A DNA stretch of 64,000 bases from Hydrolagus colliei (GCA_035084275.1 CM068779.1:1550001-1614000), one strand, 5' to 3'; shown: positions 25,999-55,405, counted from the stretch's first letter. Numbers and translations: made by a program. Notes: generated by a model from the sequence alone, not told the origin.

Positions 25999-26050
25999 AT
26001 GCAGACAGCACTACTCGGGGTAGTTGCCCTTTGCTGCTGTGTATGTGCGG
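25999..26050 (+). CDS. Signal-peptide exon, plus-strand gene
   Basis: MQTALLGVVALCCCVCA G|gtgagt. Confidence 0.88.
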
Positions 26051-26243
26051 GTGAGTCTCAGTTTCTCACTAGCTCTCAGTTGGGAGTTTATTGAAGATGA
26101 TTTAACGATAGAGACAGTGAGAAGTTGCTGACCAGTCCCTACAATAGAGAGAGAGAGAGAGAGGGCGTCAGTCAGGACGGACTGTGTAGATGTGTATTCA
26201 GTCGATGCCTCGCTGTCGTTAATATGATCTTCTCTCTCTCCAG

Positions 26244-26555
26244 TTACAGCCCAGTTCACCATCACTGTCCCACATGGTACCATTACAGTCCCTGTCGGGG
26301 GTACAGCTGAGCTTACAGTCAAAGCGTCTGGTGAGGTGGGGAGTGGTGAATGGTATTTCGGCAATGTGCTTGTTTGTCGTTGGCTTCTGTCATCAATAAG
26401 TATCTCCCCTTCTTACCAAGACCGGGCTGTGTTACTCCCCACCTGGTCTATCCAGCTAAAAGCTGTGAATTATACTGACTCTGGGGTTTACACTGTGACC
26501 ATGCTCTCACACACTGGCACCAAGGCCACAGCGACAGTCACCCTGAAAATGAAGG
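26244..26555 (+). CDS. CEACAM-like IgV N exon, type N2
   Basis: 312 nt phase 1-1; VTAQFTITVPHGT...EWYFGNVLVCRW...DSGVYTVTM...VTLKMK. Confidence 0.88.
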
Positions 26556-29500: not shown

Positions 29501-29780
29501 GAAAGGGGGAAAAGAGGGCAAGGGGGGAGAGGGAGGGAAAGGTGGGGTAAAGTCAGGGAGGAAGAGGGGGAAGTGCTGGCACACACCAGGCGTTACCAGG
29601 CCTCTGTGGCTTACAGCAACAATTTCCTGTATCTGGGCCTATGACGGCCATTTTAATTAAGGGTTAGACACAGATAATAACACACCGCATCACTTTCAGA
29701 AACCTCTGTCTCTCTGCCTGTATGTTTGTGTGTGTGTGTGTTTGGGTGTGCGTCTCTCTCTCTCTATTTTTGTGTATACT

Positions 29781-29856
29781 CACTCACTCACTCACCCACC
29801 CACTCACCCACTCACTCACTCACTCACTCACTCACTCACTCACTCACTCACTCACC
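29781..29856 (+). repeat. (CACT)n microsatellite
   Basis: Direct reading. Confidence 0.95.
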
Positions 29857-30415
29857 GTGCACAATTGGCTGCCGTGTTTCGCCCACAAATATACAGTCAA
29901 TTCACTTTATAGTATATTCTGTGTAGCGCTTTGAGACATCGATAAGATGTGAAAAGCGCTGTGTCAAAATGCAAGGATTATTATTATTATTATTACCAGT
30001 GTAGAGCTCTCATAAGAGTCTCTCTTTGTCTCGATGAATTTTAACAAGATTAGTTGACGCCACTGGTGCCCGCCTACTTCTTCTCTTGGTGTTTGTTGTG
30101 AATCTCTCTCTGTCCGTTGCAACTGACAGTTTCAACTGTTTTGAGAGATCATTAACCGTTTCTATTTATTTATTTTCCTCCAGTTTTCGACTTTAAATTC
30201 TAAATATTCTAACACCGATGTGAAGGCTGGAGCAGGAGCTGTATCAATGTAAAGTTGTACTGTATTAATGTATATTATATCTTTCCTGATTTCCATGTCA
30301 CCAATTTCTTGTTGAAAGTAACATTCTGTTGACTTGAGTTTTATTTAAACTAAAGCAGAGCAGGCTGGTAACTGTTCTCCCAACATTTACATCAAATCCT
30401 TTCCTTGCTAAACAG

Positions 30416-30501
30416 GTGAAAACAATAGCAGTGTGTCCGTCCATGTTGGGCTCAATGTTGGCGTGATTCTGATCGCTTTAGTGTCACAGTTCATCTATTA
30501 A
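30416..30501 (+). CDS. GPI-signal-like terminal coding exon (GENNSSVSVHVGLNVGVILIALVSQFIY*); exon continues to donor at 30529
   Basis: tttccttgctaaacag acceptor, phase 1; leader+N+this exon = 450 nt = 149 aa + stop. Confidence 0.78.
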
Positions 30502-31690
30502 AGACATCTGTCCCTGAGAAGACAAGCTGGTAAGTTCCTGTCTATATCATTCCACATGAACCATCACAACAGACGGACAGATGTTTAGGGTTATCAAGGG
30601 TTAGTTGGTCTCGCAAATGAGTTCAATTCTCAGGCTGGGCGTGAACGATTAGGAAAGTTTCCTGCCTCCACACCCCACCCCCACACACGCCTCTATTTAC
30701 CGGCAGTCAGTAGGAACCCGCTTGTTAGTCAATAGTCAATCCCTCTTCCTCCCTGACTTTACCCCACCCCATGTTTTCCTCCCTCTTCCCCCTTTCCCTC
30801 CCTCTCCCCCGTTATTACCCTATTTTCCCCCTTTCTCCCCTGGCCCCACTTCCATGAGAGCCTTGAGTGTTGAGACGGGCCGGCCTTGAATGAGGCAGGC
30901 GAGGGAGCGAGAGGCGAAGGGATCGTGGGATGGAGTTCCAGAGTGTGGCAGCAGAGAGGGGGAGAGGGGAGAGGAGTGCAAGGCAGTGTTGGCAGAGGAG
31001 GATACGTTATGTTGTCTACACCAGGTCCCAGTCTCCAGCCTTCTCTTTGTGCAGTTACTAGACAAGAGTCTGGCAGCTTGTATCACCCACAGCGTTTCTC
31101 GGTTCAAGAACTCTGGCCGCGTAATTCTAATAATGTGTTGCTTACATGTGATATCATCCGCAGGCCTGGGGTCAACTCTATCTCTCTGCCCCCACCCTCG
31201 ACTCCAGAACCACTGCTGTCCTGACGGATTGTCTACCAGACATCAAGTCCTGGCTGAGACCTGACTTTCTCCAATTGAATGTCCACCTCAACCAATATCT
31301 CTGCCCTCAGGCACTGAAACCCTTATTCGCGCTTTCATTAAATCCAGGCTTGACTATGAGAACTCCCTTTAAAGCCCTCCATGGCCTTGCTCCTCACTAC
31401 CTCTGCCCCCTATTAAAGCTTCACCAACATGTCCTCTGCTCTGCAGACACTGACCTGCTCCACGTCCCCCTGACCTGCTCCACTATGGACAGTCGGGCCT
31501 TCAGCCTCTCTACCCCCACACCCTCTGGAGCTCCAACCCAGAGCCCTCTCCCCCTCGCCACCTTGCATGCCTCCTGCGAGGACATTTTTAAGACCCTCTC
31601 TTGCACCGTGCCTTCAGTCACCTTCCGCACACAATTACATACACACAAACACACCCCACACATACACACATACACATGCATAAGGATATA

Positions 31691-35300: not shown

Positions 35301-38196
35301 CCAACAACAACAACTTGCACTTATACGGCGCCCTCTCACAGCGTTTGACAAAAGATTATAAGAATATAAAAACAATCCATGCAATCAACGTAACTCTTAA
35401 AAAAAACACAACTGCAAATTTTACATGTTGCTCGTGTGTGTGTATGTGCGTAATAAAATAATAAGAATGATACTTACCTTTATATAGCGATTTCCACGTC
35501 TTATCGACGTCTCAAAGCGTTTCACAGAAAACAACAACATCCCAAAGGTAGCGACAACAACAGCTTTGATTTATATAGTGCCCTCCACGCCGGACGGCGT
35601 CTGAGAGCGCTTCACAATAGCGGATCCTGGGACCGAGACAGGGGCAGGAAGGTGACCAAAGGCGCGGTCAAAGAGAAAGGTCTTTAGCCGGGACCTGAAG
35701 CTGAGAAGAGAGGGGGCGAGGCGAAGGGAGCGAGGGAGGGAGTTCCAGAGCGTTGTGGCTGAAGGCACGGCCGCCGAGGGTGAAGTGGAGGATCTCTTCC
35801 TGACGTACACACTCACACTAACAATCTCTCACACGCAGACTGACACTCACACACACACACACACACTCTGACAGCAGTGGTCCTGGAGTCGAGGGCGGGG
35901 GAATGGAAGGGTTTGCTGATCCCAGCCGTGGTGGGGAGATGAATAAGCCGCATATCAGCCCAACTCGTTTGCTGTAAGAAAGTGAGACAGTCAACATAGA
36001 CAAGCAGTAGATAGGAAGAGTTGTGCTGAAGGCACAGAGAGCAACGTTAACCTGACTTTGTATTTCACATCTGATTAACAACATCATCATAGATTGTGGT
36101 GACAGCACAGAACTGTGTCTGCGTCTGTGCTGGTGCTCGCTCCCCCACTGGAGCTCTCTACTCTCACCCCATTCCCTGTTGTGTTCTATCATGTCTGTTC
36201 TGGTGCTCTCTAAGACTCTTATCTTACTGAACAACAACAAAATTACATTTGTATAGCGTCTTTCATGTCAGGAGGATGTCCCAAGGTGTTTGACAGATAC
36301 TGCTTCAGACCCGAGCTGAGGATGGGAGGGGCGGAGGGAGGGGGGAGGGATGTGGGGGGATTAGGAGTTGCCGATAGGTCCATCAAAGAGGAGGGTCTTG
36401 AGGCGAGACTTGAAGGGGGCGAGGCAGAGGGACTTCGGGATGGAGTTTCACAGGTGTTGGAGGCAAGAGTGGCTGAAGGCTCGCCCACTAATGATTGGTT
36501 GGACGAGTGGATCGGGGGATGTGGAGCAGGCCAGAGCCTGCTGAACGGAGGGGTCGGGCAGGTTGGTAAGGGGGATAGGAGGTCACGGATGTTGTGGGTG
36601 GGGTGGGGGGCAAGGTTGTGGAGAGCTTTAAATGTGAGGACCAGGATGTTGAATTGGATCCTCTGGATGATGGGGAGCCAATGGAGTTGGGCGAGGATGG
36701 GGGGAGCTGTGGTCACGGAGTTTGGAATGGTAGAGGACACAGGCCACAGAGTTCTGGATTATCTGCAGCTCGTGGAGGGAGGAATTGGGAAGGCCAACCA
36801 GCAGGGCATTTGCATAATCAAGCCGGGATGTAATGAAGGCTTGGATGAGGGTTTCAGCGGCTTTGGAGGAGGAGTGAGGTAATGACGGAGCCGGGAAATG
36901 TTGCGGAGTTGGGGAAAGGCTGAGCGAGTTATTGCTGGGATGCAGTGGAGGAAACACAGTTGAGGGTCGAACAAGACACCTAGGTTCCTGACTGGCTTGC
37001 TGAGGTTGAATGTGCAACCATGGAGGTTGATGCCGTACTGTCAGGGATCTGCTCCTGAGCTGGGGGTTGGGATCAGGAGGGAGTGGGGGGCATGGAGGGT
37101 AGGGATAGGAGAGTGATCAAGGGTGCAGTTGGTCGAAGAGAATCATCTCCCGACACGGGAAGGAGTCGAGGGAGGAGGTCAAGGCGTAGACTGAGGCAGT
37201 GGGAGAGGGTGGGGACGGTGAGGCTGAAGGCCTGGCCATCGATGATGGGAGTGGGAGAGGCGAACGATATGAAGCAGGCTGGAGCTTGCTGAGTGGGGGG
37301 AGTTGGTTGGGGGTTAAACATCACAGGGGAAGGGAGGTCGCACATCTGAGGTTGCACTCTCAACCTCTCTAAGCCAGTCAGGAACCTGGGTGTCTAGATC
37401 GACCCTGCATTGTCCTTCCTCTCCCCACATCCGCGCCATGACCAGTACTGCCTTCCACCACCTTCTCAAATTCGCCAGACTCCGCCACTGCCTCACCCCT
37501 CAGGCCGCTGAAACCCTAGTCTACACATTTGGACCAAGCTCGACTATGGAAACTCTCCTCGTCGGCCTTCCTGGTTCTTCCCTTCACAAGCTGCAGATCA
37601 TCCAGAACTCAGCCTCTGTGCCTCCCACAATCTGGAACTCCATCCCACGGTCCCTTCTCCTCGCTCCCTCCCTCGTCTCATTCAAGGCTGGTCTGAAGAC
37701 CCACCTCTTCGACCATGCCGTCTGCAGCCCTCCCAACTCTCTCCCTCCCCTCCTAACTCTCGCCCGCCTCTGCCCCCTACCCTGCCCCTCTCCCTTGCTC
37801 GGGTCTTGACCTGACTGTTTAGCGCCATGAGACGTCCTCCCGACGTGAAAGGCTGTCTCTACAAATGTCATTTTGCTGTTGTCGTTATTTTGAGGCCATG
37901 GCGAGCCTTTTCGTTCAGGATCAGGATCCATTGACTAACAATCGGGTTCCCACTGACTGCTGGTAAACAGAGGCGTGTGTGTGGGGTGGGGGGATGTGGA
38001 GTTAGGAAGCTTTCCTGATCTTTCACGCCCAGCCTGGGAATTGAACCCACTTGCGAGGCGAATGCTCTAACCACAAGATCAACAAACAGCCAGCCAGCGA
38101 GCGAGTGAGTGAGTCGAGGTCTGGATCTAGTGTTTGTCATTAATAATAATAGTCCTTTAGGAACTTACCAGCTTGTCTTCTCAGGGACAGATGTCT

Positions 38197-38282
38197 TTAA
38201 TAGATGAACTGTGACACTAAAGCGATCAGAATCACGCCAACATTGAGCCCAACATGGACGGACGCACTGCTATTCTTTTCAT
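38197..38282 (-). CDS. Second GPI-signal-like exon (DEKNSSASVHVGLNVGVILIALVSQFIY*); exon continues to donor at 38169
   Basis: Inverted near-identical copy of 30416-30529 with intact splice sites. Confidence 0.75.
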
Positions 38283-40779
38283 CTGTTTAGCAAGGAAAGG
38301 ATTTGATGTAAACGTGGATGTAGGGAGAACAGTTACCAGCCTGTTCTGCTTTAGTTTAACTGAAACTCAAGTCAACAGAATTTTACTTTCAACAAGAAAT
38401 TGGTGTGGAGTAAGGAAACTTGCCCAAGGTTTCGCCCAGATCTGCCCGGATTCGAACATTGCTCTCACGCTTGTAAGGCGAGTTCTCTAACCACTGAGCT
38501 ACAGGAAGGAGCAGCTCAATGGAATTCAACAACAACAACAACAAAATTACATTGAAAGAGCGTCGGGAGGACGTCCCAAGGCGCTGAACAGTTATGTTGG
38601 GACCTGAGTGGGGAGGAAGGGTCGGGGTAGGGGCAGGGGGGACGGTGAGTGGGAAAGGGGGGAGAGTTAGGAGGGCAGTAGAAGGTGCGGTCGAAGAGGA
38701 AGGTCTTGAGACCAGCTCACAGTGTGGGAGCAGAGAGGCTGCAACAGGTATTTGGTAACCAACCTCTCATCATTTCTTAAACTGTTTGCCTTCACCAAAT
38801 CTTAAAGATGCTTTCCTGTAACTAGCAGTAAGTATAGGATCCAAATTATTAGTTCATTGTTGGATTACTTTTCCAGGTGTAAAAATTCATTCCAAAAATA
38901 ATAATAATAATTTGATCACTCCACAGGACAAGCTTCTCTGTCCACACACACACACATACACACACACAAACACCTCTGTCTACCCAGTACGTAGTAAGTA
39001 GGAACCAGATTGTTGGATTGCTTTTCTGGGGGTAACAATCCATTCAAAAATAACTAATAATAATAATAATTTGGTCATTCAATCCACAGATGTTTGTCGG
39101 ACGTCTCTGTGCACAATCACCCACAAAACACATACACTTTACAGCATGTTCTATAAAGCGCTTTGAGACGTTGTGAAGACATGATAAGGCCTTTTATTAT
39201 AATCTATTCTATGATCATTCCCAATTCACATCTGTTGAGATTGATTGTCATACATTATAGCCATAGATTATAGAAAAATTAAACACACCAATAATGATAC
39301 AGTTCACCCGAGTGTAAATTAATATTCTTGGTGATGATTCATGATTTGAACAAAATGATTGTAACTCAATGAGCCCAACATTAGCCCATGGTCTGGGCTG
39401 ACACACCATTGCAGTGTTGGGGAGTTGCACAATTATCAGAGTTCCTAAATATCTGGATTAAACTACAGACTGCTCTGTCTGTCCAGATGGAATTTAAAAA
39501 TCCCACAGCACTGTTTAGAAAGAGAAGGGAATTTCTCTGGTGTCCCAACCAAGAATCCCCCAAATAAAATTGGTCTCTTGATTCATGCTGTTTGCAGATG
39601 TCACTGTTTTCAAAGTGGCTGGCATATGGCATATAAATTTCACCCACAAATATACAGTCAATTCACTTTACAATGAAGCGCTTTGAGACATCGATTAGAT
39701 GTGAAAAACTCTATATCAAAATACTAGGAGTATTTTTTTTAGAAATATACAGCAACCACACTTTACAATAAATCCTATGAAGCATTGTGAAATGTCTCAA
39801 TGACTTGATAAGACATATAAAATGCAAGGATTATTTAGTGTATCATAAGGACAACACAGGCCAAATGGTCTCCTTCTGTGCTGTAATATTCTATGATCCA
39901 GTAATGTTCTTTGAACAGTAAATAGAATGGACAAATAGGAAACTGTGCTTTTTAATAATAATGCTTGCATTTGATACAGCACCTAATGACATTGTTGTGA
40001 CTTCTCAAAGCACACCATGGAGTAAATAGCTTGGGTATTTTATAATAATCCGTCCAAAAAAACACACAATACTGTAATAAAAATTGGACATTTCAATCCA
40101 TGACTGTTTGTGGGACACTGCTGTGTGCAATTGGCTAACGGGTTTCACCACAAATGTACAGTCAATTCACGTTACAGTATATTTTGTGAAGCGCTTTAGA
40201 TGTCGATACGTTGTGAAAATGCTATATCAAATACAAGGATTATTCTTCTTATTTTGTGGGTGAAACACAGCAGCCAATTGCGCACAGCAGTGTCCAACAA
40301 ACTTTCAAGGATTGATTTGGAGGCAATCACCAACAAGTGGGTTCCTATTTACTGCTAGGTAAACAGTGGTGTTTATGTGTAATAAGAACATTTACCTAAG
40401 GTATCCCCTCACCCAGAAATCAAAACCATGTTCTCGAACTTGTCAAATCGCAAATAATGGTACTTATTAAAGATATGTGGCCACATGTGCCAAAAGCACT
40501 AGATTTCACTACTATAATTAAATGCCTTTGAGAGAGAAACTAGGAAAATAACTCATACTGTACTGTATATCGATATGGCAGAAACATTATTTCTCTACTT
40601 TAAGCAGCTGAATGACATGAAATTGAACCATCAGATCATGAGCAGCTCATCCAGTTGTCTGGATATAAAACATTTTGTTTGAACATGAGTCTGCTCCCTA
40701 AACATGGTGACCAGGTCAGTGACAAACATGAATGGCACATAGATAGGTTATTGTTAAATAGAACTGTTACTGTACTTAC

Positions 40780-41094
40780 CCAGCACTGTCGGGGTGATTT
40801 TCGCTGATGCCTTTTGGTTAGTGGCTGAGGTCATGCTTACTGTGTACTCTCCAGCGTCATTATAATTCACAGATGTTAGCTGGAGAGACCAAGTGGGGAG
40901 TAACACAGCCCGGTCTTGGTAAATCGGGTTTACACTTCCACCTCCAGCTGGAAACGAGTCAACAACAATCACAGTCCCGAAACTCCGGTCACCACTCCTC
41001 ACCTCACCAGACGGTTTCACTGTAAGCTCACCTTTACCTCCGACAGGGGCTTTAATGGGATTGTGTGGGACAGTGATGGTGAACTGGGCTGTAA
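40780..41094 (-). pseudogene. Decayed N1 exon lacking its leader
   Basis: Acceptor AG>AA (41095-96), W>R, W>S and L>P changes, leader region deleted at ~41190. Confidence 0.8.
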
Positions 41095-41523
41095 TTGGAG
41101 AGAGAGAAGATCACATTAACGACAGCGAGGCATCGGCTGCATACACATCTACACAGTCCGTCCTGACTGATGCCCTCCTCTCTCTCTCTATCAGCAACCC
41201 ACTGTTTGTGGGGGACGCTGCCGCAGTCGGCTGCCGCGTTCCGCCCACAAACGTACAGTCTTTTCACTCTACAGTATATTCTGTGAAGCGCTTTTGAGAC
41301 GTCTGGAAGGCGTGAAAAGCTCTTCATCAAATGCGAGGATTATCATTGCTATAATTAACTGAGAGCTCGTGAGATAGACAGACTCACCCACACAGACACA
41401 GCGCAATATCAAATGAAAGGAGCATTATTATTATTTTGTGTGACGATGTTAATTTAAATCTTCTACCTAAACTTGGTGACCAGCTTAGTGTTAAATGGAA
41501 CAGTTACTTACCATTCACTTTCA

Positions 41524-42756
41524 ACAACAACAACAACAAATTACACTTATAGAGCGCCTTTCACGTCTGGAGGACGTCCCAAGGCGCTGCACAGGAGGCG
41601 TGTGACCCGAGCTGGGAGGGGAGTGTTTGGGAAGGGGTGAAACACGAAGGGGAGGTCGAAAAATTCGGGGTGGAACAAAAGGCACGGTCAAAGAGGAAAG
41701 TCTTCAAACCGGCCTTGAAAGAGGAAAGGGAAGAAACGAGACGGAGGGATTGAGGGATGGAATTCCATAGGGTCGGAGCAGAGAAACTGAAGGCCCAGCC
41801 TCCGATGGTGGGGCGGTTCGTGCGGGGGGCTTGGAGCAGGCCAAGTCCTGTTGAACGGAGGGTCCGGGTGGGCTTGTAGGGGAAGAGTAAATTGGTTAAA
41901 TAGGGCGGGGCAAGGCCATGTAAAGCCTTGAAGGTGAGGACGAGGATCTTGAACTCGATCCTCTGGAGGATGGGGAGCCAGTGGAGACGGGCGAGGGTGG
42001 GGGTTATATGGTCGCGGAGGCGGGTGCGGGATAATACATGGGCTGCAGAGTTTTGGATGTTCTCCAGCCTGTGAATGGAGGAACTGGGGAGGCCGACGAG
42101 GAGAGAGTTTCCGTAGTCCAGCCGTGAGGTGATGTACGCGTGCACGAGTGTTTCAGCAGCGCGGGGGGTAAGATAATTGCGGAGCCTGGCAATGTTGCGC
42201 AGGTGGAAGTAAACGGTGCCGGTCAAGGCGCGGATGTGGGGGAGGAAGGAGAGTTTATGGTCGAACGTGATGCCGAGGTTCCTGACTGGCTTTGTGAGGT
42301 GGAGAGTGCAGCCTTGGATGTTGAGGCTGGCAGCGCCCGATGTGCGGAGGCGCTGGCTTGAGCCAATCAGGAGGGCCTCGGTCTTGCTCACGTTCAATTG
42401 GAGGAAGTTGTCCCTCGTCCAGGACTCGATGTCGGACAGACATGCTGTCAGAACATCGTTGGTCTGGGGGTTGAGGGATGAGGCAGAAAGGTACAACTGG
42501 ATGTCGTCCGCATACATGTGGAAATATACCCCATGTTTGCGTATGACATCGCCCAGAGGGAGCGTGTAAATGGTGAAAAGGAGGGGGCCGAGGACAGAGC
42601 CCAGAGGGACGCCGTGAGAGACTATGCGGGGGTTAGAGGAGAAACTGTTGGAAGAAACAAAATGTAGGCAGTGGGTCAGGTAGGAATGGAACCAGTCAAG
42701 GACTGTGCCTTGAAGGTGGGAGGAAAGTCGTTGGAGGAGGATGGTGTGATCGACTG
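41524..42756 (-). mobile_element. 5'-truncated L2 LINE inserted 12 nt inside an N2 exon end (remnant 41512-41523)
   Basis: ORF 41561-42517 with YADD; (ttg)n tail abuts ttacttac|cattcactttca, homologous to 54851-54870. Confidence 0.93.
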
Positions 42757-43526
42757 GTGTGATCTAGATACAGCCCATCACCAGCAATACAAATCCCTAT
42801 AAGCCTGAACACCATAACTGTGCAAACAAAAGGAGACAGATATTACAATAAAACTTGTCTGTTGTAATGTGAAATAATAGTTTGTCTAATGTATAAAATC
42901 AATTCTGTCCCTTGAAATTCCACTTGGGTCTCAAATGACGCTATTATTTAGCATTTCAGAGCAAGCAGAAATTTGCCCAATTTCTGTAGTTCAGTAGACA
43001 CTATTTAAGAATTTAATTCTATATGCTGTGAAATGATAATACAATAGATACGTCTAGAACCAAGGGGGAATATCTCCCCCTACATTTTAACTGATTCCCA
43101 ATTTAGTGGAGCTTTAATCACTGTTCATCATTTCAATGTTTTCAATTATTAATGTATTTATTTCAGGAATGGACAAGTGCTTTCATTCTTTGGGTATAAT
43201 TGAAAGTTTGCAGTGATGCAAACAGAATTAAAATCTAATAGTTTAATGCTGGTTTAGATTGAAATTCATAATGAAATGAGTTAATGAAAATGTCAATTTC
43301 TGAGTTTAAGCTGGATGTTCTTTTACCTTCTCATTGTTTTTATAATTACAAACCTTTTGTTGCATATCATCAAATTCAGTGTTTGTTGAAGGGTTCGATT
43401 ATTTGGTGTCCACAATGGATAACTAGGGTATAATACTTGCAGAAGCAAATATTGCTTAACATTAACCACGATTATAAAAATAACTCACAGAAATATAACG
43501 TTGAAGCTGCTTGCTGTGACACTTAC

Positions 43527-43837
43527 AGTTGATATCGAGAACATATGGAAGGCTGGTGCTGTTACTAACAGCGTTGTAGGCATAGCATGTGTAATTCCCA
43601 CTGTCAGACCTCAAAACTCCAGCTAGAGTCAGGCTGTTGTTATCCACAATTAAAACAATCCTGTTGTAAAGGCGCTCTATAAATGTAAATTGTTGTTGTC
43701 ATAGCTGATTGGTTTATTGTCTTTCAACCATTGATATGAAACGTCTGTCCCTGATGCATTGCACGTCAGCCCCACAGTGTCATTATATTCTACTGGCTGG
43801 GTGACATTGGGGGTGACAACAATATTGGAAACAGAAT
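43527..43837 (-). pseudogene. IgC2 A-domain exon disrupted by a 26-bp L2-tail insertion
   Basis: DSVSNIVVTPNVTQPVEYNDTVGLTC...SYDN[insert]RIVLIVDNNSLTLAGVLRSDSGNYTC; paralog of 22496-22774. Confidence 0.88.
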
Positions 43838-45789
43838 CTGTCAAAACACAGGAGAATATTTATATTGTGTATTACATTCTGAGTAATATACAACAGCTTG
43901 TGGGGAACTCAAGTCACTTAAAACATCAGCAACAACAATTTGCATTTATACAGTGACCTTCCTGTAATGTACCGTCTCAAACTCTTGGCAGAATTGGAGG
44001 CTAAGATGGGGAGACAGTGGAGGAAACCATAGGCACGGTCAAAGAGGAACATCTTCGGGTGAGATTTGAATTTAAAAACTTGCATTTATTTAGCGCTGCT
44101 CACATGGGGTAACGTCCCAAATCTTTACACTTGGTGTAAAGATTAAAGACAACAACAACAACAAAATGACATTTATACAGCGTCTGTTGCCACCCAAAAT
44201 CTGCGATGTCCTAATCCCCTACCAACCTGCTTCGGCCGGCTCCAAGACGTGCGACTCACCCATCCCATCATTGGAAAGCAAGTCATCAGTCACTCTGCCC
44301 CCAACTTCTGGAACTCCATCCCGCAGTCCCTCAGCCTCGTCCCCTTGCAAGTCGCCCTCAAGACCTCTCTGACCTGCTGAGAAGACAAGAGAAGTTGAGG
44401 CAGTGAGTTCCAGGGATTCAGGGAAAAGTGGCTGAATATGGAAAAGCGGGATCAGGCGATGTGCAGAATGCCTCAGCAAGCCAAGTAAAAGGGCTGGGAA
44501 GAGGTGGGAGGAGTGAGGTGTGTGCAAGTAGGATAGGGCTTAGACCATCAAATGATTTACCTTTGAAACTTCAGTGATTGGTTTGTTCATCAACATGGTT
44601 CACTTGACATCCAAGAGAAAATACATTTTGCTTTTCATCCTAACCAAATGTGTATGTTCTGCAGTACAGCATTTATAATATAATTCTGGTGTCAATCGAG
44701 AATATTCCAGGACAGTATTTTTAACTGGATACTCACTGTCCATATTATCTTCATTAATCGGCAAGCATGCTATCAATAACTTTTCTGCTGTGTTCACCAA
44801 CAAATAACAACAACAACAAAATCACAACTGTTTAGCGCCTTTCGTGTTGGGAGGACGTTCCAAGCCGCTGGACAGTCATTTTTTCCGACCCGAGCTGGGG
44901 TCAAGGACAGGGAGGGTGGAGGGAAAAGGTGGCAGTTGGGGTGACCGATGGAACCATCGAAGAGGAGGTCTTGAGGGGGACTTGCGAGGAGACGAGGCTG
45001 AGGGACTGCGGGATGGAGTTCCAGAGGTTGAGGGCAGAGTGACTGATGGCTTGCTTTCCAATGGTGGGGTGGGTGTGTCCGGGTTCTTGGAGCCAGCCGA
45101 AGCGGGTTGGTAGGGGATTAGGACATCGCAGATTTAGGGTGGAGCAGGTGGCAGGGGACTAGGAGGTCGCAGATGTAGGGTTGGGCTTTGAATGTGAGGA
45201 CCAAGTTCTTGAATTGGATCCTCTGGGTGATGGGGAGCAATGGAGTTGGGCAAGGATGGGAGAGATGGTGTCACGGGGTTTGGTGTGGTAGAGGACACAA
45301 TCTGCAGAGTTCTGGATTATCAGCAATCTATGGAGGGCAGAATTGGGAAGGCCAATAAACACAATATTGGTGTAGTGGAGGTCGGGATGTGATTTACGCG
45401 TGAATGAGGGTTTCAGCAGCCTTGGGGGTGAGGTAATGGTGGAGTCGGGCAATATTGTGGAGGTGAGGGAAGGCAGAACGGATCATGGCTTGGATGTGGG
45501 GAAGGAAAGACAGTTGAGGATCTAACAAGACTCCTAATTCCTGACTGACTTGGTGAGGTTAAGTGTGCAATCATGGAGGTAGCTGCTGCCTGATGCTTAT
45601 GCTCATGCCTGATGATTAAAACAATTTGCAATTAAATAGTGCCCTTCACACAGGGTAGTGTTTCAAAGAGTTCAACTCCCTGACAAAACACTATAAAGGA
45701 AATCTACTTTGAGATGTCCTTCCAAAATGAAAAGTTCTATATATCAAATTGTAAGATCATTCTTCTTCTTATTAATAATCATTTGCCAT

Positions 45790-46210
45790 CGTGGCTCAGT
45801 GGTAGCACTCTAACTCTGAGTCAGAAGGTTGTGTCCCACTTCAGAGATTGAAGTCATATTGTCTCAGATGACACTGCAAAGCTGTGCTGAGGTTTGGTTG
45901 CACTCTATTTATTGGAAGTGCCGTCCTATGGATGAGATGTTAAACTGAGATCCTGTCGGCCTGTTCAGGCAGATACTAAACAACTCCTGATAAAGAGAAG
46001 TGAATTTCTCCTAGTGTCCTGGCCAACAAGCCCCCAAATCAAATTGGTTATTAATTTCATGGCTGTTTGGGGGACATTGCTGTACGTGATTGTGCTGCTG
46101 TGTTTGCCTCCAGATACACAATCTCTCCACTTCGTAGGAATGTGATGTACTTTGAGCTAGCCTTCCAGTGTGATAAGGCGCTACACCAAAGGCAAGGATT
46201 ATTATTATTA
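45790..46210 (+). mobile_element. Older full-length DeuSINE (SacSINE1-like)
   Basis: gtggctcagtggtagcactct..ctctgagtcagaaggttgtg head, ggatgagatgttaaac and gtgtcctggccaa central motifs, L2-type tail. Confidence 0.65.
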
Positions 46211-47427
46211 TTTAATTACAGTTTAAATTGTTATCTAGAGGTAAGTTCTGAATGATGGTCAGCCAGACCAATAATACAGCCATTAATCTTACTTTTCTCA
46301 GTATGTTTAAGCATTCTTTTGCAGGAGGCTTATATTTTGTTCCCTGGGTACTTCGTCAAGCTATTTGTGAATATTCCAATGAATATTCCCAGTTGCACTG
46401 AAGATTATAGGAATTATGTTTGTTTTACATTGTCACAAATGTCTGCAATCAAATTGTAGATTGATATATTTCCTGATTTTCTTTTTTTTTCACGCAATGA
46501 GTTGTTCGAATCTGGAATGCACTGCCTGAAAGAGTGGTGGAGGTTGATTGGATAACTTTAAGAGAGTGGTTATCTGGGGAGGATAAGTTTGCGGGCTTAT
46601 GCGGAGAGAGCCGGGGAGTGGGATTGACTTTGAATAGCCACATTATTCTACATACATAATACATAATAACAACAACTTGGATGTATATAGCGCCCTGCAC
46701 CCCGAAAGGCATCTCAGAGCGCTTCCCAATAACGGAGCCCGGGGCCGAGCCAGTGAGAGGGGGAAGTCAGTGACCAAAAGCTTCATCGATAAGAAAGGTG
46801 TTTAGCCAAGACCTGAGGTAGGAAGAGAGGGGGCAAGATGAAGGAAGTGAAGAAGGGAGTTCCAGAGCCTCGGGGCGTAGTGGCTGAAGGCATGGCAACC
46901 GATGGTAGTGCGGAGGATTCGGGGGACAAGGAGGCAGCCAGATCCGGTGAAGTGAAGGCAATGGGTGCTGTTGTGAGGAGAACGGAGGTCAGAGATGTAA
47001 GTGTAGAAGAGTGGAGGGATTTAAATACAAGTGTGATGCCTCGGTTCCATACGGGTTCGGGTAGGTGGAGGAGTTGGGAACCATTTGACTGAAGATGTTG
47101 ATGAGAGCCAAAGAGTATGGCTTCTGTCATATCAACATTTAGCTAAAGGAAATTTGTGCTCATCCAGCCCATGATGGCTGACACAACATCAGGGGACTAG
47201 GGGGTCGCAAAGTGAGGTGGAAAAATTGAGTTGGGTGTCATCCGCATACACGTAGAAGTGTTCCCGTGTCTTTGGATGACATCCCCAAGAGGGAGCATAT
47301 AAATTAGGAAGAGGAGAAGGCCAAGAATGGATCTTTGGGGTACCTGACAGGTAACTGGGTGAGAGCGGGAGGAAAGGCCGTTTGTGGAGATGTACTGTTG
47401 GCGGTTTGTGAGGTAGGACTCAAACCA

Positions 47428-50400
47428 ACAACAACAACAATTTACATTTATATAGCGCCTTTCAATTCGGGAGGACGTCCCAAGGCGCTGAACAAGAGGA
47501 GAATGACCCGAGCTGGGAGGGGAGTGTTTGGGAAGGGGTGAAACACGAAGGGGAGGTAAAAGAGTTCGGGGTGGAACTAAAAGCACGATCGAAGAGGAAA
47601 GTCTTCAATTCGGCCTTGAAAGAGGAAAGGGAAGAGGCGAAACGGAGGGATTGAGGGATGGTATTCCATAAGGTGGGAGCAGAGAAACTGAAAGCCTGGC
47701 CTCCGATGGTGGGGCGGTTCGGGCGGGGGGCTTGGAGCAGGCCAAGTCCTGTTGAACGGAGGGTCCGGGTGGGCGTGTAGGGGGAGAGTAGATGGGTTAG
47801 GTAGGATGGGGCAAGGCCGTGTAAGGCCTTGTAGGTGAGGACGAGGATCTTGAACTCGATCCTCTGGAGGATGGGGAGCCAGTGGAGACGGGCGAGGGTG
47901 GGGGTTATGTGGTCACGGAGGCGGGTGCGGGATAGTACACGGGCTGCAGAGTTTTTGATGGCCTGCAGCCTGTGAATGGAGGAACTGGGGAGGCCGACTA
48001 GGAGAGAGTTTCCGTAATCCAACCGTGAGGTGATGTACGCGTGCACGAGTGTTTCGGCAGCGCGGGGGGTAAGATAGTTGCGGAGCCTGGCAATGTTGCG
48101 CAGATGGAAATAGGCGGTGCCGGTCAAGGCGCGGATGTGGGGGAGGAAGGAAAGTTTTTGATCGAACATGATGCCGAGGTTCCTGATTGGCTTTGTGAGG
48201 TGGAGAGTGCAGCCTAGGATGTTGAGGCTGGCAGCGCCCGATGTGCGGAGGCGCTGGCTTGAGCCAATCAGGAGGGCCTCGGTCTTATTCACATTCAATT
48301 GCAAAAAGTTGTCCCTCGTCCAGGATTCGATGTCGGACAGACATGCTGTCAGAACATCGATCGTCTGGGGGTTGAGGGATGAGGCAGAAAGGTACAACTG
48401 GATGTCGTCCGCATACATGTGGAAATATACCCCATGTTTGCGTATGACATCGCCCAGAGGGAGCGTGTAAATGGTGAAAAGGAGGGAGCCGAGGACAGAG
48501 CCCTGAGGGACGCCGTGGGAAACTGTGCGGGGGTTTGAAGAAAAGCCATTGGAAGAAACAAAATGTAAACGGTGGGTCAAATAAGAACGGAACCATTCAA
48601 GGACTGTGCCTTAAGGTTGAGGTGGGAGGAAAGACGTTGAAGGAGGATGGTGTGATCGACTGTGTCGAACGCAGCAGACAGGTCAAGGAGGACGAGGAGG
48701 CAGAGGGAGCCCTGGTCACAGGCGGTTAGGATGTCATTTGTGACCTTGACCAGGGCAGTTTCTGTGCTGTGGATAGGGCGGAAACCTGATTGGAGGGATT
48801 CAAGAAGTGAGTGATTTGAAAGGAAAGAGCGGAGCTGGGAGGCAACCACTCTTTCAAGGACCTTGGATAGAAACGGGAGGTTGGAGATGGGTCGATAACT
48901 TGATGGTTGCGACGTATCAAGGGAGGGTTTCTTCAGGATAGGGGTGATGGTGGCTGTTTTAAGGGAGGTAGGGACGGTTCCTGAGGAGAGGGAAAGGTTA
49001 ATGGTGTCAGAAATGAGTGGGGCTAACAAATGGAGCTGGGTGCGGAGGAGGGGGGTGGGGATGGGGTCCAATGAGCACGTGGTGGGTTTCATGGAGGTGA
49101 TTGTTTTTGTGACTGAAAGCGGGGTGGTGGGGTTGAAAGTGTGAAATGGGGGGTGAGTAGGGGTTGAGGTAACTGATGAGGGCGCGGAGGTGGAGGAGTG
49201 GTGGGTGGAGGAAACCGCAGAGCGGATTTTCTCAATTTTGGACTCGAGGAAATCCAGCATCTCCTCACAACGAACGTTTGAGGAGAGGATCTGCGAGGTG
49301 AGGCGGGGGGGTGGGGGGGGGCAGGAGCTGGTTGGTGGTGGCGAAGAGGAGGCGGTGGTTGTCCTTCGCTTCCAGGATTATCCTGGAGTAGAAGGCTGAT
49401 TTGGCGGTGGCTAGGGCGGTGCGGTAAAATTTGATGCGGTCCAGCCAGATTTGCCGGTGGACCATGAGGCCAGATTTGAGCCAGGTGCGTTCAACTGCTC
49501 TCACTTGTCTTTTGAGGGAACGGAGGTGAGATGTGTACCACGGTGATGATCGGGAATGGGAGACGGTTTTGGAGGTGAGGGGGGCCAGGGTGTCAAGGGT
49601 AGTGGAGAGGGTGTTGTGGAGGGCGGTGGAGGCGGAGGATGGGTCTCTACAAAAAGAATGCCATTGTGGGAGGAGGTCGGAGGTTTCTAGGGCAGAGGTG
49701 AAAGTTTGAGGGGGAATCTTCTTCCAGGGCCGGTAGAAGATGGTGGTGGGTTTGGAAGTGGAGGGGGGAGGGATAGAGGTGTTGCAGGAAATGAAAAAAT
49801 GGTCAGAAATGGCCTTGTCTGTGATGGTGACGCCAGAGACGTTGAGGCCTCGGGTGATCACCAGATCGAGAGGATGGCCGTGAGTGTGGGTGGCAATGTT
49901 GATATGAAGGGAGAAGTTGAAAGACGAAAGTAAAGAAGAAAATTCAGAGGAAATGGGGCAGGAGGGTGTGAAATGGAGGTTGAAATCGCCAAGAATAATA
50001 AGGCGATCAGAGGAGGCACAAAGGGAAGTTAAAAGTGAAGAAAAGTCTGAGATGAAAGTGGGGGAGGGTTTGGGGGGGCGATAAACTTGTAGGATTTTGA
50101 AAGAACTGTGGGAGGAGTGAGAAAGGGTGAGATGTTCAAAAGAGGGGAAGGAGCCGGAGGAATAGGGGGATAGGGCGAGGGATGACTTTGAGATGAGGGC
50201 CACGCCACCGCCACGACGGTTGGGTCGAGGAGCATGGTGGAATGTGTAGTTGGGTGGTGTGGCTTCAACAAGGGGGAAAGTGTCGCCTGGGGTGATCCAA
50301 GTCTCCGTCAGGGCCATGATGTCAACGTTCTCACCAAGGATGAGATCCTTGATACTGGAACAGAGGGAAGCGGTGGGAGGGTCGAGCAGGGACAGTAAAC

Positions 50401-51121
50401 GAGGAGGGCGAAGAGAAAGAAGGGTAGAGAAGGAATAACGGAGAGGGAGGGTTGGGGGGAAAAGCTTGAATAGGGGGAGGGAAGCTCGGGTCATGGCAGC
50501 AGCCATATTGCGCATGCGAGAGACCAGGAGCGAGGGTCAATGGGGCGGCATCATCCCAAGGGATATTAGGCCGCGGCTGGGAGATGCAGAGGCGCTGCGG
50601 TCTGAAGCCTGACCGGGGCTGCGGCCGAGGCTGGGGTTGTGGGTTTTAGGGCCAGTTTAGGGCTGCGTGTGTCCGGGCTATGGGTCGCCGCATCGAGGCT
50701 GGAGCCGGGACCAGGGCCGTTAGTCTCGTGGCTGTGGGTCTTGGAGCCAGGGCTGTGTGACACGAAGCCGTTGGTCGCGGGGCTGGTCTTGGAGCCGGGA
50801 CTGTGTGACACGGAGCTGGAGCCAGGGGTGCGTGTCACGAAGCCGGGGGTGCGGGTTCTGGGGATGTGGCTGTGGCTGGGTCTGGGTCTGGGGCCGGGGG
50901 TCCTGGGACTGTGGCCGGAGCCGGGGCTGTGAGTCTCGGGGCTGGAGCCAAGTCTGTGGCTGTGGGTCTTGGGGCTGGGGATGGTGCCGGGGCTGGAGCG
51001 GGTTGAAGGGCTGTGGGTCGGGTCAGGTCAGGTCGAGCAATCTCTGCCATATGCTATATGATCTTAATGCACAGAGACAGAGACAGCTATAGACCCGTGT
51101 GTCCCTCTCGCCGCCATTTTG
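47428..51121 (-). mobile_element. Probable full-length single-ORF L2 LINE (EN+RT), two frameshifts
   Basis: Segments 49265-50515 (ALTETW, GDFN, SDH), 48577-49260, 47462-48580 (GVPQGS, YADD); aacca TSD at 47423-47427 and 51122-51126; empty site at ~1455-1470. Confidence 0.95.
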
Positions 51122-52392
51122 AACCAGACTCAAACCAGGCGAGTGCGGTCCCACTGATAATTCTACATTATTATATATAGTTATACGTATTTGCACTAGT
51201 GTTTGTGCCTATGCTGCTTAATCCCATACACTCTATTCTGAAAGTAATTTGAAAGCTTTTGAAAGTCTGGCATTGCTTTCCTTATTTGTCAAACCCAAAT
51301 ATGATTTTTTGAGGTCAGCCTGGCAGCCAAACTCCAGCAGTTACCCTTTGGGTTCTGATGCCTTGGCACGTGCCTAATGCTCTCCGGAATTGGAAAAAGA
51401 GGATGCATCCAACCAGGGAGTGAGTGTGCATTCCATTCCAATACAGTAATTGGGAATTTTCATGTGTAATTGGTGGCATGGAACTGTCAGTCTGATTTAG
51501 ATCATGGTATACAGGGTGATGGGTTTCCGCATGTTTCAATACACCCAGCTGACCAAAAGACTTTTCATGTCAAAAGGTCTAAAAGTGTTTCACACGAGAG
51601 CAGAGGCCAGACTGCACTACTGCAAACCGTAATTAATTCCTTCTGCAAAACCTAGATTTACCATCAGCGAACACAGAAGTGGTTCCAATGTCCTATTTAA
51701 TCCTTTCAGAATACCAGCCTCAAAATACCAACCAACCTCTCATCATTTCTTAAACTGTTTGCCTTCACCAAATCTTAAAGATGCTTTCCTGTAACTAGCA
51801 GTAAGTATAGGATCCAAATTATTAGTTCATTGTTGGATTACTTTTTCAGGGGTAAACATTCATTCCAATAATAATAATTTGATCACTCCACAGGATGGAA
51901 CCATGGACAAGCTTCTCTGTCCACACACACACATACACACACACAAACACCTCTGTCTACCCAGTACGTAGTAAGTAGGAACCAGATTGTTGGATTGCTT
52001 TTCTGGGGGTAACAATCCATTCAAAAATAACTAATAATAATAATAATTTGGTCATTCAATCCACAAATGTTTGTCGGACGTCTCTGTGCACAATCGCCCA
52101 CAAAACACATACACTTTACAGCATGTTCTATAAAGCGCTTTGAGACGTTGTGAAGACATGATAAGGCCTTTTATTATAATCTATTCTATGATCATTCCCA
52201 ATTCACATCTGTTGAGGTTGAACCATCAGATCATGAGCAGCTCATCCAGTTGTCTGGATATAAAACATTTTGTTTGAACATGTGAATATGAGTCTTCTCC
52301 CTAAACATGGTGACCAGGTTAGTGACAAATACCCTGGAACATGAATGGCACATAGATAGGTTATTGTTAAATAGAACTGTTACTGTACTTAC

Positions 52393-52704
52393 CCAGCACT
52401 GTCAGGGTGATTGTCGCTGATGCCTTTTGGTTAGTGGCTGAGGTCATGATTACAGTGTACTCTCCAGCGTCAGTATAATTCACAGATTTTAGCTGGAGAG
52501 ACCCAGTGGAGAGTAACACTCGGTCTTGGTAAATACGGTTTACACTTCCACCTTCATTTGGAAACCAGTCACAAACAAACACAGTCCCGAAACTCCAGTC
52601 AGCACTCCTCACCTCACCAGACGGTTTCACTGTAAGCTCAGCTGTACCCCCGACAGGGGCTGTAATGGGATTGTGTGGGACAGTGATGGTGAACTGGGCT
52701 GTAA
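52393..52704 (-). CDS. CEACAM-like N1 exon
   Basis: 312 nt phase 1-1, intact splice sites; ...WSFGTVFVCDWFPNEGG...DAGEYTV. Confidence 0.85.
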
Positions 52705-52900
52705 CTGGAGAGAGAGAAGATCATATTAACGACAGCGAGGCATCGGCTGAATACACATCTACACAGTCCGTCCTCACTGATGCCCTCTCTCTCTCTCTCT
52801 CTCTATTGTAGGGACGTGGTCAGCAACTTCTCCCTGTCTCTATCATTAAATCATCTTCAATAAACTCCCAACTGAGAGCTAGTGACAAAGTGAGACTCAC

Positions 52901-52952
52901 CCACACATACACAGCAGCAAAGGGCAAATACCCCGAGCAGTGCTGTCTGCAT
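52901..52952 (-). CDS. Signal-peptide exon (MQTALLGVFALCCCVCV)
   Basis: Intact ATG and donor; four 30-bp repeats upstream at 52961-53080. Confidence 0.85.
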
Positions 52953-54372
52953 CCTGGCCTCAGCCTGTGTCCTGGTCTCTGGTCACTGAGCAGCCTGTGT
53001 CCTGGTCTCTGGTCACTGAGCAGCCTGTGTCCTGGTCTCTGGTCACTGAGCAGCCTGTGTCCTGGTCTCTGGTCACTGAGCAGCCTGTGCTGGTTACACT
53101 CAGTCAGTCAGTAGCGTTATCTCTTCTCCCAGCTCTGCACTTATTGAGCAAATAGGGAGTAGGGAGTGGGTGGGGACTGACTGAAGTGGTCCCTGGCCAC
53201 TGATATGTAATGTCTCAGATATTTCAAGTCAAAACATGGTTTGAACAAAAACAGAAGTTGCTGCGGAAGCTCAGCAGGTCAGGCAGCGTCCATGGAGAGA
53301 GGAAAAGGAATCCAGGGGAAGGGGAAGGAGAGTGGGAAAGGTGGGAGAGTTAGTGGGGCAGCCGAAGGCGCGGTCGAAGAAGAAGGTCTTGAGACCGGCC
53401 TTGAAGGAGGAAAGGGAGGAAGCGAGGTGGAGGGGCTGTGGGATGGAGTTCCACAGTGTGGGGGTAGAGAGGCTGAAAGTCCGGCCGCCGATGGTTGGGG
53501 GGTTAGGGCGGTGGACACGGAGCAGGCCTGAGTCTGCTGAACAGAGGGGACGAGCACAGGCTGATAGGGAGACAGCGGGTCAGAGATATAGGCGGGGGCA
53601 AGGCCGTCAATGGCCTTAAACGTGAGGACGAGGATTTTGAATGGGGGAATGGGGAGCCAGTGGAGATGGGCGAGGGTGGGAGTGATATGGTCGCGGAGCC
53701 TGGTGTGGGAGAGAGAGTGCGCAAGCGACAGATTCCCGAACAATCTGCATCTTGTGAAGGGAAGAGCTGGGAAGGCCGACGAGGAGGGAGTTCCCGTAGT
53801 CGAGCTTAGATGTGATCAACGCGTGGGCAACCATCAGTTCCCGAGCAGCTCAACATACATTTGTCTGGACTTTTAACATCCTCCATCGAAATGTTAACAC
53901 AGGCAGAGAGGATTTCAGTTTCAATGTCTGGCTCAAGGCAGCATCGTAGTGGCTTCTCAGCCAAAGAACTCAGTTGACACCAACCCCAGTCCGAAACCTG
54001 ACAATGTTTTCCTATTATGATTGCGTAATTGTTCTCGAATCCAGGCAGGATTCAGGGCGAAACCTTGGGAAGGTTTCCTTACTCCACACACACACACACA
54101 CATCTAATAATAATCCATCCCAAAAAAACCACCATAATAAAATTGGTCATTTTCAACCCACTGTTTGTGGGGGACGCTGCCGGGCGCAGTCGGCTGCCGC
54201 GTTCCGCCCACAAACATACAGTCATTTCACTACAGTATATTCTGTGAAGCGCTTTTGAGACGTCTGGAAGGCGTGAAAAGCTCTTTATCAAATGCGAGGA
54301 TTATCATTGCTATCATTAACTGAGAGCTCGTGAGACAGACAGACACAGCGCAATATCAAATGAAAGGAGCAT

Positions 54373-54769
54373 AGATTCATAGATTCATAGAATTTTACGG
54401 CACAAAAGGAGGCCATTCGGCCCATCTAGTCTGTGCCGGCTCTTTGAACAGAGCGATTCAATCCCACTGCCCTGCCCGCTCCCCATAGCCTAATAGACCT
54501 GTTCTCCCTAAATAAAGATCTAATTCCCTTTTAAAAGTTGTTATCAAATCAGCCTCCACCACCTTTTCAGGCAATGCATTCCAGATTCCAACAACTCGCT
54601 GAGTGAAAACATTTCTCCTCAGCTCCCCTCTACTTCGCCTTGAAACTATTTTAAATCTGTGACCACGAGTCACAGATTCACCCACGAGTGGAAATCGTTT
54701 TTCTCTATTTGCCCTGTCGCTCGAAACCCCTCATGATCTTATAAACCTCTATTAGGTCTCCCCTCAATC
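54373..54769 (-). mobile_element. Young CR1 3' fragment, near-identical to 3895-4288
   Basis: Absent from the paralogous intron at ~41420 (ggagcat|tattat). Confidence 0.92.
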
Positions 54770-54857
54770 ATGATTATTATCATTTTGTGTGACGATGTTA
54801 ATTTAAATCTCCCTAAACTTGGTGACCAGGTTAGTGTTAAATGGAACTGTTACTTAC

Positions 54858-55169
54858 CCTTCACTTTCAGGGTGACTGTCGCTTTTGCTTCGGTGCCAGT
54901 GTGTGAGAGCATGGTCACGGTGTAAAACCCAGCGTCACTAGATTTCACAGCCTTTATCTGGAGAGACCCAGAGGGGAGTAACACAGCCCGGGCTTGGTAA
55001 GAAGGGGACATATTTGTTGATGATACAAACCAACGGCAAACAAGCACGTGGCCGAAATACCATTCACCACTCCGCACCCCATAATTTGCTTTGACTGTAA
55101 GCTCAGCTGTACCCCCGACAGGGACTGTAATAGTATCGCGTGGGACAGTGATGGTGAACTGGGCTGTAA
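54858..55169 (-). CDS. CEACAM-like N2 exon
   Basis: 312 nt phase 1-1; ...KANYGVRSGEWYFGHVLVCRWFVSS...DAGFYTV. Confidence 0.85.
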
Positions 55170-55353
55170 CTGGAGAGAGAGATCATATTAACGACAGCGA
55201 GGCATCGACTGAATACACATCTACACAGTCCGTCTTGACTGATGCCCTCTCTCTCTCTATTGTAGGGACTGGTCAGCAACTTCTCCCTGTCTCTATCGTT
55301 AAATCATCTTCAATAAACTCCCAACTGAGAGCTAGTGAGAAACTGAGACTCAC

Positions 55354-55405
55354 CCGCACATACACAGCAGCAAAGGGCAACTACCCCGAGCAGTGCTGTC
55401 TGCAT
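55354..55405 (-). CDS. Signal-peptide exon
   Basis: MQTALLGVVALCCCVCA; three 30-bp repeats upstream at 55414-55503. Confidence 0.85.

Follow-up and report, generated by a model that had tools for sequence, protein, structure and literature searches.

The question raised by this locus is whether the front ends of immune receptor genes that stand apart from any gene body of their own are still put to use by splicing to distant anchor exons. The locus lies in 64,000 nucleotides of Hydrolagus colliei DNA (GCA_035084275.1, CM068779.1:1550001-1614000), the whole of which was analysed and is called the window below. On its minus strand, two intact cassettes, each with a leader exon and an IgV-like N exon, are separated by broken exons from two candidate anchors, namely an exon of glycosylphosphatidylinositol (GPI) type and the body of a receptor gene with an immunoreceptor tyrosine-based activation motif (ITAM). 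An earlier note on the window proposed that each N exon could join either anchor, in a protocadherin/UGT1-like architecture. All the exons that it named were present, with coordinates accurate almost to the base; the shared-anchor system that it built on them was not supported. We consider that the region is probably birth-and-death debris of nested duplications in a CEACAM immune gene cluster, a judgement made from the sequence of the window and its comparison with Callorhinchus milii.

The cassettes and their gene family

The two cassettes in question (pair I) and a third intact one consist of the following exons.

55405-55354, minus strand: leader exon of the N2 cassette (52 nt; ATG at 55405; phase-1 donor G/gtgagt)
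55169-54858, minus strand: N2 exon (IgV-like, 312 nt, phase 1-1, open; ccag/TT...AAGG/gtaagt; without the canonical cysteine pair)
52952-52901, minus strand: leader exon of the N1 cassette (a 30-bp repeat present four times upstream)
52704-52393, minus strand: N1 exon (IgV-like, 312 nt, phase 1-1, open)
7342-6796, minus strand: third intact cassette (leader 7342-7291, N1c exon 7110-6796), which heads duplication unit U1 and lies outside the range of the earlier note

The N2 and N1 cassettes each have an open frame that encodes a signal peptide and an IgV domain. Their N domains scored 28.6 and 25.6 bits with Pfam V-set and matched the N domains of C. milii CEACAMs with E values of 1e-22 to 1e-30 (tblastn), and the N1 domain was of the same type as that of C. 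milii P0003 (CEACAM1/5-like receptor). Cassettes and splice sites, together with about 170-300 bp of upstream sequence, were intact and conserved with C. milii; the acceptors of the N exons were strong (polypyrimidine fraction 0.7-0.8, CAG) and the donors good. The claim of two intact leader-N cassettes was thus borne out by open frames, splice sites, V-set scores and tblastn matches.

CEACAMs were the top protein matches for the spliced translation of the minus-strand Ig exons (E down to 4e-174, CEACAM5/1/6-like proteins). The closest were from C. milii (78-81% over parts) and further ones were from sharks, rays, sturgeons and mammals; no match was identical. The databases searched, one of them with 5.8 billion protein clusters, yielded neither a transcript nor a protein of the source species, and no protein bearing a GPI-type tail. 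The composition of the window was vertebrate-like (GC about 46%; CpG observed/expected, 0.48). For the analysis of synteny, the window was compared with four C. milii loci (L001-L004, about 145 kb in total, from the region of contig WEZY01001515.1), and it was collinear with the CEACAM loci of this contig at about 73-85% nucleotide identity. The minus strand 24259>6500 matched L001 5170>25702 one exon after another, over the ITAM gene and the cassette that follows, and 53249>52218 and 44819>42769 paralleled the C. milii P0003 gene at its 5' end. In addition to this relatedness and synteny to annotated CEACAM genes, the exon organization was that of CEACAMs: a leader ending in phase 1 (52 nt, G/gt) and followed by an IgV-like N exon (312-315 nt, without the canonical B/F-strand cysteine pair; Pfam V-set, 23-29 bits), IgC2-type A and B exons in phase 1-1, a transmembrane (TM) exon, and an ITAM tail encoded in short exons. 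By these features, we take the window to be a slice of a holocephalan CEACAM (carcinoembryonic-antigen-related, Ig-superfamily) gene cluster, either that of a relative of C. milii or a diverged paralogous block. CEACAMs have been reported from cartilaginous fishes (PMC13278318, PMC5112662); a literature search on CEACAM and Callorhinchus found nothing relevant, and the cluster was not described in the papers searched.

Broken exons and duplication history

On the minus strand downstream of pair I, the following features are met before the GPI-type exon.

43837-43527, minus strand: dead A-type IgC exon, below the dead A exon (311 nt; acceptor ttttgacag/ and donor T/gtaagt intact)
41522-41195, minus strand: N2 remnant with donor and 3' flank, abutting the tail of a long interspersed nuclear element (LINE); the final 11 nt of the exon (41522-41512) survive
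41094-40780, minus strand: leaderless N1 copy, N1u3 (frame open, donor intact, acceptor AG changed to AA)

The intervening exons had been described as dead, and this was confirmed with some nuances. The dead A exon retained both splice sites and was disabled by one 32-nt insertion (43699-43668), which puts the exon out of frame and brings in a TAG at 43679-43677; N1u3 retained its frame and donor, with an in-frame cryptic AG 6 nt downstream of the mutated acceptor; only the N2 exon was reduced to 11 nt. Because both splice sites of the dead A exon were kept while the insertion yields an internal stop, this exon can be expected to act as a poison exon. Each N exon is the second exon of its cassette and has a strong acceptor, and therefore a transcript from the N2 promoter should include the N1 exon; since the dead A exon stands in the path with intact sites, a productive join to the GPI exon needs its skipping. 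If the promoters of pair I fire, the default transcripts would be leader-N2-N1-dead A or leader-N1-dead A, ending at the stop of the dead A exon, and the outcome would be nonsense-mediated decay or a truncated secreted fragment. Tandem N exons are spliced consecutively in rodent multi-N CEACAM/PSG genes (PMC2832619), which have the same phase 1-1, and N2 followed by N1 would likewise be the expected default from the N2 promoter; the internal N exons of rodents are without their own leader and promoter, whereas the N exons of the window each have both. In C. milii, the counterpart of the dead A exon (L004 17760-18014, L002 23232-23513) was open, with His-Trp replacing the second Ig cysteine, and was skipped by the gene models; the exon may have been non-functional before the lineages of the window and C. 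milii split.

The origin of this arrangement was traced by self-comparison of the window. Positions 1-1460 corresponded to 45953-47427 and 4289-5255 to 51263-52221 (96.7% identity each), and 4756-7184 to 38757-41168 (94.4%); inverted matches were found between 25786-26674 and 55672-54772 and between 30299-30733 and 38405-37930. Two units, U1 (7581>1) and U2 (53249>45953, on to 42769), had flanks that were 96.7% identical. U2, with N1 and the dead A exon, corresponded to the initial 5.6 kb of C. milii P0003 and ended at a LINE (42756-41525). This LINE was directly followed by the N2 remnant with its 3' flank, then by the latter half of an N1-type intron 1, N1u3, and N1-type sequence to 38757. 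The N2 remnant and N1u3 (pair II) are a degraded copy of pair I, minus about 1.6 kb with the N1 promoter and leader, and sit 2.5-3.2 kb upstream of the minus-strand GPI exon. The LINE segments concerned are as follows.

47428-51262, minus strand: LINE insertion in U2, downstream of the N1 exon
54372-54769, minus strand: LINE 3' fragment within the 3' flanking sequence of the N2 exon (97% identity with 3896-4289)
41525-42756, minus strand: LINE 3' part at the truncation junction of U2

From these data, we suppose that the cluster was shaped by nested segmental duplication, inversion, gene conversion and insertion of LINEs and short interspersed nuclear elements, and that the cassettes of pair I are young 5' gene fragments. 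The sequence from N1 through 42.8 kb would be a partial duplicate of a CEACAM1-like gene, truncated just past the dead A exon and corresponding to the 5' end of C. milii P0003 and to the 7.3-kb cassette. In the simplest history, a leader-N2(-N1)-GPI gene would have been duplicated in inverted orientation. The minus-strand GPI exon would come from the sister copy of a plus-strand leader-N2'-GPI' gene (see below), its own pair II having been destroyed by a LINE-associated deletion, and a further duplicate, comprising pair I and the CEACAM1-like 5' part, would now lie upstream of it. Birth-and-death evolution, gene conversion and the calling of pseudogenes by the N exon are standard for CEA families (PMC2832619, PMC11646289), and inverted gene pairs are thought to favour gene conversion of N exons (PMC11646289).

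The N1 cassette was itself a mosaic, with an N2-like promoter (98.9%) and an N1c-like exon and 3' flank (93.6% and 97.8%, respectively). It looks like a simple recombinant, in that one recombination would account for the mosaic. The mosaic was also considered as proof of selection, and this was rejected, since the joining of an N2-like promoter to an N1c-like exon and 3' flank suffices.

The window resembles the CEACAM/CEA clusters of mammals, Xenopus and fishes in the split leader, the cysteine-less IgV N exon, the phase 1-1 A and B exons, and the TM exon followed by several short cytoplasmic exons with an ITAM or an immunoreceptor tyrosine-based inhibition motif. It further shares with them head-to-head or inverted paralogues, N exons diverging more quickly than the sequence around them, and damaged N exons and splice sites that mark pseudogenes (PMC2832619, PMC11646289, PMC5112662). 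Unlike these clusters, it has a tandem leader-N pair with nearly identical promoters and a variable 30-bp repeat 5' of the ATG. The unit of this repeat, CACAGGCTGCTCAGTGACCAGAGACCAGGA, stood immediately 5' of each leader ATG, and its copies vary. Three copies were present at N2 (55512-55421), four at N1 (53089-52968) and two at N1c (7419-7358), all on the minus strand, and a single copy ahead of the leader in two genes described below, those of N3 (24258-24229, minus strand) and N2' (25952-25981, plus strand). The unit may be a variable repeat of the 5' untranslated region or the promoter.

Part of the arrangement, such as the inverted arms and stranded cassettes, could also arise if contigs of this highly repetitive locus were mis-joined or duplicated by haplotype, the true genome giving each cassette its own anchor exons. 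The many blocks of 94-97% identity would agree with this. An inverted repeat (7838-8275 versus 59011-58574, 99.3% identical) lies near the four assembly gaps, and the right end of the window may not be reliably ordered and oriented. The occurrence of two different LINEs at the same breakpoint in U1 and U2 would also fit such an artefact. However, the runs of N were confined to 60.2-63.5 kb (60234-63458), and 38-55 kb was free of gaps; the duplicated blocks differed by 3-18% and carried private repeat insertions, so that collapse or duplication of identical sequence does not explain them, and C. milii has stranded cassettes comparable to those of the window. We therefore regard an assembly artefact as quite improbable. 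As for the shared breakpoint (1460/4289 in U1; 47427/51263 in U2), the two LINEs there had long open reading frames on opposite strands (plus-strand 1593-4203 in U1; minus-strand 47462-50515 in U2), and the site could be an insertion hotspot or the trace of a replacement event.

The open frames of the cassettes argue little for function. In neutral simulations with as many substitutions as observed, a 104-codon frame stayed open in 31-73% of trials. The ratio of non-synonymous to synonymous substitution rates (dN/dS) among the N exons was 0.84-1.96, not significantly above 1 except in one pair (N1c versus N1u3; dN/dS 7.2, p = 0.015), and these values do not separate diversifying selection from neutrality. 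Since the neutral simulation often leaves the frame open and dN/dS is near 1, the intactness of the N cassettes is weak evidence of function at best. Stranded as they are, the cassettes would be a clear example of how duplication leaves intact-looking gene front ends behind.

The GPI-type exon and the ITAM gene as candidate anchors

The nearer candidate anchor and a related plus-strand gene, which the earlier note did not include, are as follows.

38282-38169, minus strand: 'GPI' exon (phase-1 acceptor 38282; TAA 38199-38197; consensus donor CTG/gtaagt after 38169)
25999-30529, plus strand: compact gene (leader 25999-26050, N2' 26244-26555, GPI' 30416-30501, donor after 30529)

The GPI exon encodes DEKNSSASVHVGLNVGVILIALVSQFIY, and an ATTAAA overlaps its stop. 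The peptide has a small-residue stretch (NSSAS) followed by a hydrophobic tail of about 18 residues up to the stop. Judged by eye, the peptide, which ends in KNSSASVHVGLNVGVILIALVSQFIY, would fit a GPI signal with small omega-site residues, a short spacer and a moderately hydrophobic end (best 15-residue Kyte-Doolittle mean, 2.38 versus 3.27 for a true TM segment). The GPI exon and the TM exons had the same position and phase 1-1, the donor was kept, and the lengths were 114 versus 132 nt, with a nucleotide identity of about 42%. It looks like a truncated exon of TM type, a descent suggested by position, phase, size and the kept donor. GPI-linked CEACAMs arose repeatedly via stop codons in TM exons, and primate CEACAM5-8 and a swine CEACAM likewise have, where the TM exon would be, a short exon that begins at a phase-1 acceptor and keeps its downstream donor (PMC2832619). 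A counterpart of the GPI exon was not found in the approximately 145 kb of C. milii sequence (parts of contig WEZY01001515.1). On the reading of the region as debris, the exon would add one more independent case to the membrane exons truncated by a stop in the CEACAM family.

The compact gene was predicted to encode a 149-aa protein with a leader, one IgV domain and a hydrophobic tail. It is head-to-head with the ITAM gene (ATGs 1.8 kb apart) and convergent with the minus-strand GPI exon; GPI' shares its stop codon and kept donor with that exon, and the intron between N2' and GPI' is 3.9 kb. Around the two GPI exons, about 240 bp were 96-100% identical, within sequence that otherwise could not be aligned. 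In the coding part, the two copies had three differences, all of which were non-synonymous. Because this paralogue has the structure leader-N2'-GPI', an N2-type exon plus a GPI exon appears to be a natural three-exon gene design at the locus, which lends indirect support to the joining of N exons to the GPI exon as proposed earlier.

The question is then whether pair I belongs to such a gene. N2 and/or N1 would be live alternative 5' modules of a two-promoter gene, the last coding exon of which is the GPI exon at 38282; an intron of 14-16.6 kb with skipped pseudo-exons would separate them, and the products would be GPI-anchored CEACAMs with a single IgV domain or with the N2-N1 double IgV. The design of the plus-strand paralogue agrees with this, as do the conserved cassettes and upstream sequences and the near identity of the GPI block within unalignable surroundings. 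Xenopus has single-IgV GPI-linked Ceacams, besides single-IgV TM and secreted members (PMC5112662), and the one-IgV product predicted here from sequence is the same. However, the dead A exon with its stop and intact splice sites lies in the path, and the destruction of the proximal pair II suggests that this gene copy died. In addition, purifying selection was not seen between N2 and N2' (dN/dS 0.84), the differences in the GPI exon were non-synonymous throughout, and no matching protein was found in the databases searched. On balance, a two-promoter GPI gene is unlikely, although we do not think it far-fetched.

The more distant candidate anchor is the ITAM gene, composed as follows.

24211-24160, minus strand: leader (same type as the other leaders)
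24018-23771, minus strand: N3 exon, broken (in-frame TAG 23770-23768; last approximately 24 codons and donor gone)
22774-22496, minus strand: A1 exon (length a multiple of 3)
21021-20758, minus strand: B1 exon (length a multiple of 3)
20218-19943, minus strand: A2 exon (length a multiple of 3)
19273-19016, minus strand: B2 exon (length a multiple of 3)
18680-18549, minus strand: TM exon (length a multiple of 3)
16419-16364, 15529-15503, 14587-14545, 12350-12295, 11244-11220 and 10732-10716 (stop), minus strand: six cytoplasmic exons

The lengths from A1 to TM agree with the phase 1-1 structure that had been described. Pfam I-set, Ig_2 and Ig_3 each matched the body of the gene four times. The six cytoplasmic exons were located through C. 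milii exon guides and synteny. The ITAM (YEEL-x7-YSSL) was split across the second and third of them; a search of single open frames with a regular expression for the ITAM found none, the motif straddling two exons, and low-stringency tblastn with cytoplasmic tails gave mostly noise. In C. milii P0004, the orthologue of this gene (L001 13873-13914), the middle tyrosine motif was SEDSNL (Asp for Tyr), where the window has DYSSL (14587-14545), and the next tyrosine motif of the window was degenerate (HQPGI for YKNI); therefore, the usable tyrosine pairs differ between the two species.

This module had been called N-less. It has no usable N exon, but it does have its own leader and the truncated N3, which a repeat-associated rearrangement cut at about 23770; the orthologous C. 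milii gene has a complete N exon. The ITAM gene was probably self-contained ancestrally, and the loss of the 3' end from its N exon would be recent. Likewise, the positions 38282 and 22774, named as the first usable phase-1 acceptors downstream of pair I, do hold such acceptors, but 'first usable' is a frame argument and not a spliceosome argument. The lesson is that splicing is not predictable from phase compatibility and open frames.

At protocadherin and UGT1A loci, the variable exons are first exons without acceptors and lie upstream of promoter-less constant exons. The window has in common with these loci several similar variable units with their own promoter-like sequence, all oriented alike and placed upstream of potentially shared exons. 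In contrast, its variable units have two exons (leader and N), and the N exons are second exons with normal, strong polypyrimidine-CAG acceptors; only two units are live. Of the would-be constant modules, the ITAM module has a conserved promoter, a leader and a broken variable exon of its own, and the GPI exon once had its own cassette pair. Between the cassettes and the anchors lie broken yet spliceable exons that would compete (the dead A exon and the cryptic acceptor of N1u3), and the convergent plus-strand gene precedes the ITAM module. To reach A1 from the cassettes, transcription would have to continue for about 30 kb through the GPI exon with its stop and ATTAAA, then along the plus-strand gene in antisense and beyond the promoter and leader of the ITAM gene, and the join of the cassettes to A1 is, on this layout, improbable.

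The full proposal, in which each leader-N cassette splices to either the GPI exon or the A1-B1-A2-B2-TM-ITAM module and so yields matched decoy and activating receptors, is hence barely credible to us. It can appeal to the uniform phase 1-1, to the ITAM gene being intact apart from its N exon, and to a C. milii gene model with a long-range join (P0037; see below); it is opposed by the acceptors of the N exons, the poison exon in the path, the self-contained ancestry of the ITAM module and the long read-through. Nor did the decoys prove to be matched by the same binding domain: the N2 and N1 exons were 74.8% identical in nucleotides, N2 and N2' were about 55-63% identical to N1 at the amino-acid level, and N3 was less than 50% identical to N1 or N2, unlike GPI decoys that are closely matched to their partner. 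What survives of the earlier interpretation is the N-to-GPI join as a natural design, not the shared-anchor system.

If birth and death, the ordinary explanation, holds, the locus has descriptive value as a CEACAM cluster of a chimaera-like fish with an ITAM receptor and a putative single-IgV gene of GPI type.

Possible signs of continued use and C. milii gene models

Several observations weigh against the reading of the region as debris. Firstly, apart from N3, 11 of the 11 exons of the ITAM gene were intact, which is unexpected in an old pseudogene. As far as its exons indicate, another N exon might rescue this intact body, or its product might be N-less; joining the leader to A1 with N3 skipped gives a clean open frame of 494 aa, and an N-less receptor from this gene is possible. 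The intactness fits either a very recent loss of N or continued use. Secondly, the identity between the N2 and N1 cassettes was 98.9% in the promoter and 96.7% in intron 1 (96-99% across promoter, leader, intron 1 and 3' flank) versus 74.8% in the N exon, and such a homogenised scaffold with divergent N exons could reflect selection for distinct, expressed N domains. Thirdly, the annotated C. milii product P0037 (leader-N-TM-ITAM; gene model spanning 33 kb) connects the first leader-N cassette over 26 kb with a TM-ITAM module, leaving out a second cassette and several Ig exons. In the corresponding region of L002 (10001-43109), tandem intact leader-N cassettes start at 10001 and 19435, and the TM-cytoplasmic module lies at 36.8-43.1 kb. 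Note that P0037 is an NCBI prediction only, in a one-member cluster with no transcriptome source; if the model is right, long-range splicing of cassettes to anchors may occur in the holocephalan lineage.

It is on the hint from P0037, with which the N-less, otherwise intact ITAM gene is compatible, that the stranded leader-N cassettes of holocephalans, with their homogenised promoters, could be taken as alternative 5' modules, spliced over tens of kilobases onto downstream GPI, and perhaps TM-ITAM, anchors. We hold this to be very doubtful. Were it true, an innate immune receptor family would have a novel means of pairing binding domains with anchors; one anchor would be displayed with several binding domains, which would be relevant to research on paired and decoy receptors.

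Two further observations concern the C. milii sequences. The TM-cytoplasmic module of L002 holds both CEACAM1-like and ITAM-type cytoplasmic exons. In the model of P0003, the first approximately 160 residues came from a tandem repeat of about 2 kb (L004 9290-11233), and a normal CEACAM leader exon, MQTARLGVVALCCCVCV, was found at L004 13410, just 5' of the N exon of P0003; for these reasons, the annotated start of P0003 is probably wrong.

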